Source: Salpingoeca rosetta
Lineage: Eukaryota > Protista > Choanoflagellata
Direction: 5' to 3'
Length of the DNA: 64,000 nt
Assembly: GCA_033442325.1 (NCBI GenBank)
Contig: JAWQFM010000025.1
Coordinates: 565,843-629,842, forward strand
Positions within the stretch are counted from its first letter, which is position 1, and every line of letters starts with the position of its first letter. The notes beneath the pieces are model-generated. The model was not told the origin of the DNA. It did no database searches and saw nothing but the letters and a program-made list of their open reading frames with translations. Of the stretch, positions 51,999 through 60,216 are shown piece by piece. A program made the translations under genes and the position numbers.

Positions 51999-54900
51999 GT
52001 TGCAAAGGCGCTGCTTGAGCTGCCGACGGCCATCTGGGCGTCAAACACGAACATCAAGCGCCGCTCAACAAAGCTCGCAAAGGGACAGCGTGAGTTGACA
52101 GCGGTGGCGGTGATGGTGATGATGCAGAGGGGAAGGAGTGGGGGTGCAGAGGTGCACGTGGCGGTGGTGGTAGGGGGCATTCTGTGCCACACAATACGCA
52201 CTCGTTTCCCCTTGCTCACAGAATCACACACACACACACACACGCACACACACACACACACACACACACACACACACGCACAACACCATTCTCCACGCCA
52301 GGTCGCATGGCCAACAAGGCGCGGAAACTGCAAACTTTGGCGCTGCAGGGCGAATCTACGCCGAACCAGGCGTCAGCCACCACAACCACTACGACCGGCA
52401 CACCCGCAACCACAACCACAACCACAACCACTACGCCCGGCACACCCGCCACTGCCGACACCAGTGCAGCACCCGACATGTCACCAAAGAAGGCGCCAAC
52501 GCCTCCTCCCACGCGGCCAAAGCCAAAACCACGGCCAGCCACGCGCCCCAAACCCATCATGGATGACAGCATGGGCGTCAGCGTTGCGTCTGCGCTTCCA
52601 CCGCACCTCTCTCCATCACGCGCAGGCAGTGCAAGTGGCGTGCTTGGTGACAACACCACAACCAGCACCAGCAGTGATGGCAATGACAGTGGCAGTGGCA
52701 ATAGCGGCTTCAACCGGAGCCAACGTCCAAGCATCAAGCTGCAGTCCTTCACGGGCGAGGTGAGGTGATGGGCGAGAGAGAGTGTGTGTGTGTGTGTGTA
52801 TGTGTGTGTTTGCGTATGTGTGTGCGAGTGTATGTGTGTGTGTGTGTGAAAGCGCGTGAAGAAGATGATGGGGGATGCCGCCTGGCTTGCTCAGCCTTCT
52901 TTTAACGTTTGTGCACACCGCAAACCACCACCTCATCACACACACATACACACCATACACACACCACCCCTCGTCTGTCCTGCTTACACACACAACACAC
53001 GTACATGCGCACACAACACGCGTACATGCACACGTGATGTTGCTGACAGGCGACTGACACTGACAGCGGCGATGTGGGTGCGACAGCAGCAAAGCGGCTG
53101 GCCACAATTCTCGACCTCCAAAACTCCACCAATGACGACGATGACGATGAGGAGGATCCATATGCGTCGTGTGAGGATCTTGATGATGAAGAGGATGAAG
53201 CGAGCGGTGTCACTGGCCAGTACAACGTGCGCGCGCGTGCGCAGGATCTCGGCAATCCGAATGCGGATGTTGGCGTTGCCTGCAAGCACGAGGAATCGTC
53301 TCCATATCCCATGGCGTCTGCATCCATGCAGCACATTGCCGATGCCATTTCAAACGCCTACGGCGACGACGAAGATGACGACGAAGGCGAAGAAGACGAA
53401 TACGGATACGACAGCGCAACCACCGACGACGATGATGATGATGATGATGAGGAGGAGGAGGAGGAGGAGGAGGATGTGGGCGTGTCAACGTTTTCGCGTG
53501 TGAAAGCGAGTGTACGCCGCGCAAAGAAGCTGAAGACGAAGATTGAGGCGCCAACAGACCAGCCGTGGTTCAAAGCGGCTGTGCACCGCAGCGATCTCGT
53601 CACGCTCAAGGAGGACCAATCGTCCGGAAGGTTTCTGGTGTATCCCAGCAAGCACGACATTGGAAACTACTGTGTCAGCGTGTCGACAGGCCCGGGCAAG
53701 GTGTGGACGGGCGTTGTGATCCACTACGGACCTCAGCTGCAGATGGAGGACGCAGGCGTGTCGTTTCAATCGTGGCAGGAGTGGATTGCACACTACTCCG
53801 TGCATCCGCTGGCATGCGGTGTCACGCTCACCGGTCCAAATACCAGCGCTGACGATGATGGTCTTGATGCTGGCGTAGAGGCAGACGTGTCATCCGTTGC
53901 AGCCGAGAAGAATGGGATGAGTGCTGAGAAGACAGAGCAGAGCGGGCGGCAGCATGTGCCGAGTGTTCATGTGAACGACGATGTTGGTGAGACCAACCCA
54001 CCTTCAGCAGCGGCTGCTGTGGACGTTGAGAGCAAACGCGACAGCGTTGCCATCAGGTACAAGGACAGAGAGGCGTGTTTGCGTATTGTGTTGTGTGTTT
54101 GTTTGTTGGTGCGTGTTGTGTGTGTGTGTGTGTGTGTGTGTTGTGGTGTGTTGTGTTGTGTTGTGTTGTGTTGTGTGTGTGTGCACTATTGGTCACTTTC
54201 ATGAACACGTTGCTTACTACCTCCACGGTTCCAACTCCATCACCACGACGACGAGCAGTCCATCGAATGCTCGCCTCCGCCCCTCCGTCGTCTCCGCCAG
54301 TTCAGTTGGAAGCCGCCGACACTCCACGCTCGAATTCACTGGTACGTGTGTGTGTGTGTGTGTGTGTGTGTGTGTGTGTGTGTGTGTGTGTGTGTGTGTG
54401 TGTGTGTGTGTGGGTGGGTGGGTGTGTGTGGGTGGGTGGGTGTNNNNNNNNNNNNNNNNNNNNNNNNNNNNNNNNNNNNNNNNNNNNNNNNNNNNNNNNN
54501 NNNNNNNNNNNNNNNNNNNNNNNNNNNNNNNNNNNNNNNNNNNGCCGTGGTCATGCACCGCACAGTTGACTGACACATTGCTCACGCACTGTGATGCCAC
54601 AGGTACAACGACATTGTCCCCTACGATGCAAGTCGCGTTGTGCTGCACAAGTGCACACCGGACTACATCAACGCAGTGAGTGTTGGTGGTCGTGGTGGTG
54701 CTGTGTATGTGTTCGCACATGTGTGTTTGTGTTTGTGTTTGTGTTTGTGTTTTTTGTTTTTGCGTGTGTGAATGTTTGTGTGTGTGCGTGTGTGTGTTTA
54801 CATGAGTGCATGTTGCTTGCTTGATTTCTCATTGTGTTGGTGCGTTCAGTTGCACACATACGTGGGCGCTCCGACTACAATCCACCCCTCACTCTGGCTT

Positions 54901-57900: not shown

Positions 57901-60216
57901 CGCGCACGCACACACACACACACACACACTCTCTCTCTGTCTCTCTCTCCCTGTCTCTCTCTCTCTCTCTCTGTCTCTCTCTCCTTTGCACCAACAGGGC
58001 TCGCCCAGCCAACCGCCAGCCCACGGCGTGGGACCACGTACGGGCTTTGACTCATGTCGCGATGTTACTGCAATTCTTGTTGTTGTCGTCTGCGGTGATG
58101 CTTGTCTTCTTGTTCTTGAAGGGTGATGGCCCTGTTCGCATCCACGTGTGGTGGTGCTGCCGCTGCGTTTCAGTGTCGATCTTCACCACGCAATTCTCAC
58201 ATACCATCGTTACCATGACCGCCTACCTCCATTATCATCGCCCCCACGTTGTTGCCGATGACGACTGCATTACCAGTTGGTGCAGCTTCTATCAGAGCCA
58301 CCGTTGGCCATTGCATCCATTCTCCACCAGTGCGGTAGGCGGCTGCGTGCTTTGGGTGATGTTTGTGATTGCAATTTCGTACGGCGTGGTGTTGAATTTG
58401 CTTGATGCGCCAAACACACTCTCTGGCAGTCTCAGTCTTTCCTCGTGTGACATCACCACGGATACACACACTCACACTCACACACTCACACTCACACACA
58501 CACACACCACACCACGTTAACCCGTTTCAGCCACGCGAAAGGACATTGAGGAAGCAACAGTGTCACTGTTCAAGGTGTTTGCTTCGCAGGGGCTGCTGCT
58601 GCCGTTTATGTGCAAATTGGCCGAGTGGGACATCAACATGTGCGATGGAGAGCACCTCGTCTTCAGGAAAAACAGGTGCACATGTGTGTGTGTGCGCGCG
58701 CGTGCGCGCGTGTGTGTGTGCGTGTGTACATGCACGCGATTTCATTTACATGTACGTGCGTGAGGACATGTACACGTGTGGAGGGGTATCTATGGACCTG
58801 TGGACGTCGGCACGCGTAGTGCGATGTCTTCAAAACCTCACTGCTGTCCCTTTGAGTTGTGTTGCTACTTTGTTTTGCGTCAATTCACGTTCCCTCGTAC
58901 AATGTGTGTTTCTCACCACCACGGCCTTTTAGCCTGGCGACAAAGTTGTTGACGGCAACGCTCAAGACCTATGGACAAGGATTCCTCAAACGTGTTTTGC
59001 AGCCGCTCGTGGATAAAATGATGGAGACACCGGACATGTCCTATGAAATCAACCCAGCCATGGTGTGTCCAAGCACACGCTATCCAGATGTGTGTGTGTA
59101 TGGGTGTGTGGGTGTGTGGGGGGGGGGAGGGGGTGCGTGTGTGGGTGCGTGTGGGGAGGGATTTTATGAGGGTGTACGTGAGTGTGCACATACAGTGCAA
59201 TGTGTTTTTGTGCCTGTAACCTTTGTTCCAAATGTGTATCATTCGTATCGAGGCTGTTTATTTGCTCACATGCACATGTACGCGTGCACGCATACACGTG
59301 CACATATACGCATGCGCAAACCAACTGACACAACAGGTTGACAAGGCAGACAATCTGGGCGTGAACCGGAGCAACCTGAAACGTTTGACGGAGAGTTTCT
59401 TCAACAACATCATGGACTCCATCAACCGCGTGCCGCTCGCTGTTCAGGTCCTCTGCCATGGCGTTGCTCGCGCCACCACCAAGAAGTGAGTGCAAGCACG
59501 TGCATGTGCTTTTGTGTGTGTTTGTGTGTCGATTGATTTGAACTTCTTCCGCGCGTTGCTTGAAGATTGACGCACTCGAAACGCGCGCGCACACATACAC
59601 ATACACACACACACACTTGCACACAATTGCACAATTGCATGAACGCACGTCAACATCTTCACTCTCGCGCGTGTGTAAATTGTGTCAGGTTCCCTGAGGT
59701 GAAGTGCACCGCCGTTGGCAGCTGCTTCTTCCTTCGTTTCGTCATGCCGGCCATTGTGTCGCCGCGCGCGCACAACATCGTGGACGGCCCGCTCCCACCA
59801 CGCGTACAACGCGGCCTTGTGCTCGTCTCGAAGGTACTGTTGTTGGTGGTGTTGTTGTTTTCTTGTTCTTGCTCTTGTTGTTGTTGTTGGTCTTGTTGTT
59901 CTTGTTCTTGCTTTTGTTCTTGCTCTTGCTCTTGCTTTTGCTCTTGCTTTTGCTCTTGCACTTGCACTTGTTCTTGTTGTTCTTGTTGTTGTTGTTCTGC
60001 GGCTTGCTTCCAGTGACAATCCACCAACCCTCATCTCATGTTAACATCACCATCGCTTACCCCCTCTCACGCATCCCTCGTGTTCCCGAAACTTGAAAGG
60101 TTCTTCAATCCGTTGCGAATTCCACGCGGTTCTCCGGCTTCAAGGAGGAATACATGGAGTGCATGAACGCATTCGTGAACCTTGCATCAACCCGCGGCAT
60201 TGAATTCCTCAACAAG
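51999..60216 (+). CDS. SH2 - protein tyrosine phosphatase - RasGAP (NF1 GRD-like) fusion protein; both ends probably lie in gaps
   Basis: Exons 51999-52090, 52302-52760, 53050-54056 (SH2: WF...GRFLVYPS...YCVSV...F.SW.EWIAHY). PTP exons ~54603-57110 ([58 protein letters not shown]). Linker exons 57309-57386, 57610-57710, 57998-58037. GAP exons 58277-58334, 58531-58675, 58933-59062, 59337-59485, 59689-59833, 60100-60216 ([35 protein letters not shown]). PTP-to-GAP junctions are in phase with no stop. Confidence 0.85.

Follow-up and report, generated by a model that had tools for sequence, protein, structure and literature searches.

Does a single gene of the choanoflagellate Salpingoeca rosetta join an SH2 domain, a protein tyrosine phosphatase (PTP) and a RasGAP in one chain? 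The question arises from a window of 64,000 nucleotides (the whole stretch of DNA analysed), which is C25:565843-629842, C25 being contig JAWQFM010000025.1; positions without a prefix are those of the window. The original prediction, made from the sequence alone, read 51999-60216 as such a gene, in the order SH2, PTP, RasGAP. We find that PTP and RasGAP are indeed made as one protein in S. rosetta, but that the overall domain order and size proposed for it were wrong. At a probability of about 0.8, two misplaced fragments of a single gene lie in the window, while the body of that gene, PTSG_10895, is at C25:752.5-762.5 kb. The true gene most likely encodes a chain of about 2000 residues that carries PTP, RasGAP, an inactive NUDT9-like domain, RhoGAP, SH2 and PH.

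PTP and RasGAP in one transcript

The region 51500-61000 was translated in three frames, and the predicted splice was rebuilt by hand. Between 54603 and 60216 this gave 18 exons, all with GT-AG borders and consistent phases:

54603-54675, 54937-54987, 55255-55352, 55565-55627, 55754-55856, plus strand: first five of nine PTP exons (Pfam, transcript joints)
56017-56061 (WPD loop), 56283-56366, 56706-56828 (P-loop exon), 57012-57110 (Q loop), plus strand: PTP exons, continued
57309-57386, 57610-57710, 57998-58037, plus strand: three basic, serine-rich linker exons (219 nt demanded by the contig coordinates; the orthologues have a linker here as well)
58277-58334, 58531-58675 (arginine finger), 58933-59062, plus strand: first three of six NF1-like RasGAP exons
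59337-59485, 59689-59833 (FLRF), 60100-60216, plus strand: RasGAP exons, continued

These borders match the predicted ones, and the frame runs from an intact classical PTP, with its NRY loop at 54603, into an NF1-like RasGAP whose arginine finger (FRKN/S) spans the border between exon 58531-58675 and the exon at 58933. Single exons match the Pfam profile PF00102 collinearly (profile positions 7-32, 49-78, 171-198 and 207-233), and those that follow match PF00616 (27-67, 108-144 and 157-200). The NCBI protein of the 54544-60680 piece (P0003) contains both domains, with E-values of 3e-63 and 1.7e-29, respectively.

Two raw RNA runs (X19, X20) and two contig runs (X4, X5) were aligned to 53700-59650. 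The X4 and X5 contigs are spliced and therefore derive from RNA. PTP and RasGAP exons occur together both in X5 contig 7 (5068 nt) and in X4 contig 3 (4482 nt), with GT..AG joints at 54984>55252, 55626>55753, 55855>56016, 56366>56706, 57108>57307, 58037>58277, 58333>58530 and 59061>59336. The remaining joints adjoin masked microsatellites, and the coordinates in the contig records close those holes exactly. The contig distance between 56826 and 58530, 377 nt, corresponds exactly to exons 57012-57110, 57309-57386, 57610-57710, 57998-58037 and 58277-58334. Joints and coordinate fit thus place the PTP-RasGAP chain on a single spliced RNA in two independent studies, and no break occurs across 57110-58531, the interval for which an RNA check had been proposed. 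Orthologues carry the same chain.

That PTP and RasGAP are merely neighbouring genes, joined in the contigs by read-through or assembly chimeras, is hardly credible: contigs alone cannot prove a single transcript, but the linker exons splice in frame and contain no stop, the RasGAP lacks a start at an ATG of its own (exon 58277 begins mid-domain), the identical structure comes from two studies, and the same fusion is found as a single open reading frame (ORF) in four other taxa.

The gap at 54444-54543 and the true 5' end

The proposed link between SH2 and PTP crosses 54444-54543. Exon 54259-54341 leaves one nucleotide and exon 54603 supplies one, so that a direct splice between them is out of frame. 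The SH2 exons are found in other contigs than PTP-RasGAP (X5 contig 5 and X4 contig 1), and continuity across 54056-54603, for which an RNA check had been proposed, was not confirmed. The letters of contig 7 upstream of 54603 have no match in the aligned stretch. Their last 30 translate to ...GRANAHLNR, which is the missing start of the PTP domain, and this 30-mer has a single genomic match, 133 kb away from the window at C25:753175-753204. A low-depth genomic contig leaving 54544 leftward maps to C25:753473-753502. Three further exons, without SH2, lie at C25:752.5-753.2 kb, where the ATG at C25:752524 is preceded by an in-frame TGA 63 nt upstream and a 5' untranslated region (UTR) of about 392 nt.

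A gene collinear with the window, in which the SH2 lies upstream of the PTP and a short exon is hidden in the gap, would agree with the adjacency of the two pieces on one strand, and exon 54259-54341 ends in ...LEFTG, which resembles the start of a PTP domain. It nevertheless deserves almost no credence, given the out-of-frame join and the transcript start at C25:752.5-753.2 kb with its own ATG and 5' UTR. Moreover, the flanks of the gap are separate old scaffolds, and the N-termini of the orthologues match the C25 start and carry no SH2. The hidden exon was dropped as a candidate once the upstream transcript letters had been mapped to C25:753 kb. The SH2-PTP link across 54444-54543 is an assembly artefact.

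Small scaffolds and their joins

The origin of the two pieces can be traced from the scaffold joins in this part of the window:

51415-51514, no strand: 100-N scaffold join; the sequence to its right is NCBI scaffold GL833097.1
51515-54443, plus strand: old scaffold GL833097.1, 2929 bp, PTSG_11518 'partial' (exact length and protein match)
54346-54443, no strand: (GT)n plus GGGTGGGT motif; 98 bp 100% identical to C25:760665-760762
54444-54543, no strand: 100-N join of two old scaffolds unrelated to each other; no intragenic sequencing gap
54544-60680, plus strand: old 6137-bp scaffold, PTSG_13202 'partial', XP_004987545.1 (exact size and protein match)
54544-56272, plus strand: assembly duplicate, 1729 bp 100% identical to C25:753503-755231
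60598-60680, plus strand: low-quality scaffold end; matches C25:755232-755315, the beginning of the true next exon, at 87% identity
60681-60780, no strand: 100-N scaffold join

From 51415 rightward, small old scaffolds are chained by exactly 100 N each (51515-54443, 54544-60680, 60781-63782 and 63883 onwards). Order and adjacency across such joins in this part of C25 are uninformative.

After a (CA)n tract, C25 jumps directly to the exon expected after window position 60216. Together with the 87% copy at the scaffold end, this jump indicates that 4.3 kb are missing from the main scaffold between two (CA)n tracts and are supplied by the window piece; the 6137-bp piece fills the collapse at C25:755231/755232. 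Translation of 60598-60680 as it stands in the window yields an incorrect peptide and a spurious acceptor site.

Could the window copy instead be a genuine second, partial locus left by a recent segmental duplication? The 1729 bp are present twice in the assembly at 100% identity, but one end of the duplicate coincides exactly with a scaffold edge while the other falls within a (CA)n tract, and the unique parts of the two copies are complementary rather than redundant. The three NCBI gene models tile one protein, and the pieces have the same sizes as old unplaced scaffolds. Such a duplication is thus very unlikely. In a genome search, both window pieces were otherwise single copy, the 1729-bp overlap excepted.

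Two further features of this region were noted. At 55864-55894, RNA reads are piled on an intronic GT-rich stretch with loose (GT)n ends and joints that go backwards, which looks like microsatellite cross-mapping rather than expression. Also, residues 1-16 of PTSG_11518 are encoded by a predicted start exon (51553-51600) in what most likely is intron; this is because the gene model needed an ATG, while the scaffold contains no more than an internal part of the gene.

The reassembled gene

Reassembly of the PTSG_10895 locus gives 47 GT-AG exons and one ORF of 6021 nt, which encodes 2006 amino acids (aa):

aa 1-85: N-terminal segment
aa ~86-355: PTP, followed by the basic linker
aa ~429-770: NF1-type RasGAP
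aa ~826-1090: NUDT9-homology domain (NUDT9H)
aa 1091-1265: RhoGAP, followed by a long disordered linker
aa 1607-1700: atypical SH2, followed by a Tyr-rich acidic cluster
aa ~1885-1985: PH-like domain

Downstream on C25 the frame stays free of stops through the C-terminal part of the RasGAP, the NUDT9-like domain, the RhoGAP, the Tyr-rich acidic stretch and the PH-like domain, up to a TGA at C25:762512. The NCBI entries tile the model exactly: PTSG_10895 covers aa 1-255, 677-1252 and 1799-2006, PTSG_13202 covers aa 108-677 and PTSG_11518 covers aa 1246-1797. Two stretches bounded by microsatellites would have collapsed in the main scaffold, and the missing DNA would have persisted as small scaffolds that were stitched side by side 133 kb away in the present assembly.

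Dinucleotide-microsatellite collapses in the main scaffold are seen at C25:755147-755232 and C25:760633-760852 (L005:148-233 and 5634-5853), with 4.3 kb and at least 2.9 kb lost. The NCBI model PTSG_10895 bridges both of them in frame, and hence appears complete. Just before the PH, at aa ~1835-1875 (C25:~760960-761440), lies a conserved Tyr-rich acidic cluster of the type Y-D-E-Y-G-G-Y-Y-D, which recurs in the S. infusionum and ERZ795105 orthologues described below and may hold tyrosine phosphorylation sites.

Orthologues in other choanoflagellates

When 1.8 billion representative proteins were searched with a single RasGAP exon, PTSG_13202 came out at the top, followed by two long proteins of the same layout. 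The family now includes two further species and two environmental relatives:

Salpingoeca infusionum EP00049_P015322 (P0139): orthologue
Hartaetosiga balthica EP00055_P004559 (P0010): orthologue
ENA ERZ795105 NODE_13197 (P0005): environmental relative
TARA scaffold_10851 (P0138): environmental relative

The orthologues are single ORFs with the same domain order and are 38-47% identical to the model over more than 1200 aa. The S. infusionum protein aligns with model aa 2-1341, 1607-1694 and 1779-1995, and that of H. balthica with aa 55-1257; the two environmental proteins are also collinear. In Pfam, P0005 shows PTP, RasGAP, RhoGAP, SH2 and PH, and P0010 shows PTP, RasGAP and RhoGAP; the order in ERZ795105 is PTP, RasGAP, NUDT9_N, RhoGAP, SH2, PH. 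The linker before the SH2 is longer in S. rosetta than in the orthologues. Catalytic motifs are conserved in all of them, and the proteins are unnamed and undescribed in public databases.

TARA_SAMEA2623946 scaffold_10851 (L008) is a genomic contig from an uncultured marine relative in which a weak PTP call lies directly upstream of RasGAP-NUDT9_N-RhoGAP on the same strand, and is DNA-level support for the fusion outside cultures. A family-profile protein search returned no member from Monosiga brevicollis or from outside the choanoflagellates; this search is uninformative, as it was swamped by receptor PTPs and missed even P0005 and P0138, two sequences of the alignment used as query. A different RasGAP combination was also observed, in a 1760-aa protein (P0045) that has a RasGAP, a nitric-oxide synthase oxygenase and a FAD/NAD reductase in one chain.

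Probable position of the SH2 domain

The original prediction of an SH2 upstream of the PTP was correct in that an SH2 fold lies at about 53566-53847; its true position, however, is most likely about 1250 residues downstream of the PTP, after the RhoGAP. The piece 51515-54443 most probably has its place at C25:760633, in the intron that follows the last RhoGAP exon, and contributes four exons:

51999-52089, plus strand: last RhoGAP helix, model aa 1252-1282; phase-0 start, joins ...DHGQQIL of C25 exon 760506-760632
52302-52759, plus strand: Thr/Pro-rich linker, aa 1282-1434; orthologue alignment reaches aa 1341
53050-54056, plus strand: acidic linker and SH2 (about 53566-53847; Pfam, tblastn, AlphaFold2 and Foldseek)
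54259-54341, plus strand: exon ending ...STLEFT/G, phase 1; joins the C25 exon at 760852 (G/AFNEQGGFYQD)

The joint between exon 53050-54056 and its downstream neighbour was seen in raw RNA reads and in contigs. The basis for the two outer junctions consists of phase fit, the 98-bp overlap (mostly microsatellite), contig-length arithmetic and orthologue alignment. The 98-bp identity at C25:760665-760762 falls within this same intron behind the RhoGAP. Use of the canonical donor at C25:760632 ends the last RhoGAP exon in phase 0 and joins it to 51999-52089, completing the final RhoGAP helix, a junction conserved in S. infusionum and the TARA orthologue. The junction 54341>C25:760852 (...LEFTG/AFNEQGGFYQD) is also conserved among orthologues. 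The SH2 contig extends 892 nt past exon 54341, a length equal to the sum of the six 3' exons (629 nt) and a 263-nt UTR; its end is a (GT)n tract. The (GAT)n(GAG)n tract of exon 53050-54056 is where contig 7 breaks off and contig 5 begins. Finally, orthologue tails in which the SH2 lies between RhoGAP and PH hit 53395-53910 in tblastn, with E-values of 8e-9 and 3e-12.

The strongest competitor assigns the SH2 scaffold to a different gene and leaves a chain of PTP-RasGAP-NUDT9H-RhoGAP-PH, 1461 aa long, made with an alternative donor at C25:760636. It offers a single open frame with GT-AG borders, the length of the 5068-nt contig happens to fit, and the SH2 scaffold lacks an overlap on its left side. 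The orthologues, on the other hand, have an SH2 at exactly this position that matches the one in the window, and their alignment continues through both junctions. The identical 98-bp overlap, the right phase from the canonical donor and the 3' exons and UTR in the tail of the SH2 contig likewise speak against it, as does the SH2 piece itself, which contains neither a start nor a stop codon, save the invented first exon in the NCBI model. We therefore regard a chain without the SH2 as improbable. This had been our first full model, and it was rejected once the orthologue tails had matched the SH2 in the window and the canonical donor had proved to give fitting phases.

Several observations weigh against the 2006-aa chain as reassembled here. 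Neither SH2 junction (RhoGAP exon>51999 and 54341>C25:760852) was seen directly in reads, and the left end of the SH2 scaffold does not overlap the main scaffold. Coverage of the gene in the raw RNA runs X19 and X20 is very thin, too shallow for most joints. In H. balthica the transcript terminates directly behind the RhoGAP, and shorter isoforms may exist. Two of the S. rosetta domains score below the Pfam cut-offs, namely the SH2 (PF00017, E 1e-3, 19.5 bits against 21; the orthologue SH2s pass) and the PH (PF00169, 18.9 bits against 25.1; the ERZ795105 orthologue reaches 37.3 bits). In terms of biochemistry, the enzymatic activities, substrates, ligand binding and regulation discussed below are predictions from sequence.

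Properties of the domains

The PTP has the HCX5R P-loop, the WPD loop, the Q loop and LNRY (the KNRY phosphotyrosine-recognition loop), all conserved in the orthologues. Among solved structures it comes closest to the D1 domains of receptor-type PTPs (PTPRS/LAR/PTPRA, E about 1e-75; PTP1B, 1e-41), rather than to SHP2. The idea of an SHP2-like head on a GAP is incorrect: the PTP sits near the N-terminus and is receptor-type D1-like, and the SH2 lacks the phosphotyrosine-binding arginine. Whereas animal SHP2 has tandem N-terminal SH2 domains, the hallmark of its type, the true N-terminus here, as in the orthologues, consists of 85 aa without SH2, and the only SH2 of the chain is devoid of Arg betaB5.

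The RasGAP retains the VFRKNS finger and the FLRF motif, as predicted, and the finger arginine is conserved in all five sequences. The nearest structure is the GAP-related domain (GRD) of neurofibromin (6ob2/1nf1, E about 4e-42, versus 3e-23 for p120GAP), which the RasGAP part resembles in its arginine finger (FRKNS) and FLRF/PAIVSP motif. Unlike in neurofibromin, however, the GRD lies between PTP and NUDT9H, with no Sec14/PH_NF1 module and no HEAT/ARM scaffold. The Sec14-PH profiles (PF13716, PF21877) are absent from the Pfam lists of P0010, P0139 and P0005, whereas NF1-type matches have both. The RhoGAP has GLYRVSG (the arginine finger, GxYRxSG) and NLSLVFGP (the asparagine of NLAxVFGP), both conserved, and matches PF00620 with E 2.3e-39 on PTSG_10895 and RhoGAP structures in PDB at around E 1e-22.

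The stretch at aa ~826-1090 aligns with NUDT9 and the NUDT9H of TRPM2; here it is attached to GAPs and a PTP, not to an ion channel. With orthologue sequences as queries, PDB matches were 1q33 (NUDT9, E 6e-26) and 6co7 (TRPM2 NUDT9H, E 3e-30), and the S. rosetta model scores 122 bits against a sea-urchin TRPM2-like protein. NUDT9_N (PF25969) appears in the precomputed annotation of the orthologues and PTSG_10895. The motifs GRGxLxRWGPNH and TDNAW are kept. No Nudix box (GX5EX7REUXEEXGU) can be recognised in any of the five family members, the aligned region in S. rosetta being LHLPTDRRQIALEFPPTLQEYFGFDG, and hydrolysis is therefore unlikely, as it likewise is for human TRPM2 NUDT9H. Judging from these motifs, the domain probably binds a ligand without hydrolysing it.

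The AlphaFold2 model of the SH2 (pLDDT 73.5) matched the SH2 domains of Csk, Crk, Grb2 and Src in Foldseek with TM scores of 0.7-0.8. Arg betaB5 is replaced by Tyr in three of three family sequences (FLVYPS in S. rosetta in place of FLVR; FKVYKS and FLVYES in the other two), while Arg alphaA2 is kept. The Tyr at betaB5 makes canonical phosphotyrosine binding doubtful.

Implications

These results describe a fusion of three signal-terminating enzymes (PTP, RasGAP and RhoGAP) with SH2, PH and a TRPM2-type NUDT9H. The domains are known individually; their combination is a new arrangement of known domains. In animals, a similar coupling is achieved by the phosphotyrosine-dependent p120RasGAP-p190RhoGAP complex and SHP2. 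The toolkit there is the same (SH2, PH, RasGAP, RhoGAP, PTP) and acts on the outputs of receptor tyrosine kinases, but here it resides in one polypeptide. We found no paper on the architecture, on the three PTSG identifiers or on a Monosiga brevicollis protein with PTP, RasGAP and RhoGAP; the Monosiga surveys (Manning, 2008; Pincus, 2008) were outside the scope of this search, and a prior mention in Monosiga is possible. RasGAP and RhoGAP are not mentioned in Suga (2014).

The original view that the chain hard-wires phosphotyrosine removal to Ras inactivation is a fair reading, but incomplete, as it missed the NUDT9H, RhoGAP and PH that lie outside the window. The protein may be a membrane-recruited terminator of signalling of the receptor-tyrosine-kinase type, with three 'off' activities in one chain: PH and SH2 would bring the chain to activated receptor sites, where it would remove phosphotyrosine and switch off Ras-type and Rho-type GTPases. 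By analogy with TRPM2, the catalytically dead NUDT9H might serve as an ADP-ribose sensor and add nucleotide control.

In vertebrate TRPM2, NUDT9H is a ligand sensor for ADP-ribose. That the dead NUDT9H of S. rosetta senses ADP-ribose, or a related nucleotide, and thereby allosterically gates the RasGAP, RhoGAP and PTP is a tentative and rather doubtful proposal. If true, it would couple the second messenger ADP-ribose directly to the shutdown of Ras, Rho and phosphotyrosine signalling. It would also be a ligand-gated triple 'off switch' for which animals have no counterpart, and NUDT9H would for the first time act as a sensor in something other than a TRPM2 channel.

Because activities that are separate in animals are fused here, the protein is a natural 'Rosetta stone' for functional pathway links that predate animals, an idea that is testable in S. 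rosetta, which is genetically editable. The reference genome splits this 2006-aa signalling protein into three 'hypothetical' entries, two of them 'partial', and domain-architecture surveys of S. rosetta therefore miss it.

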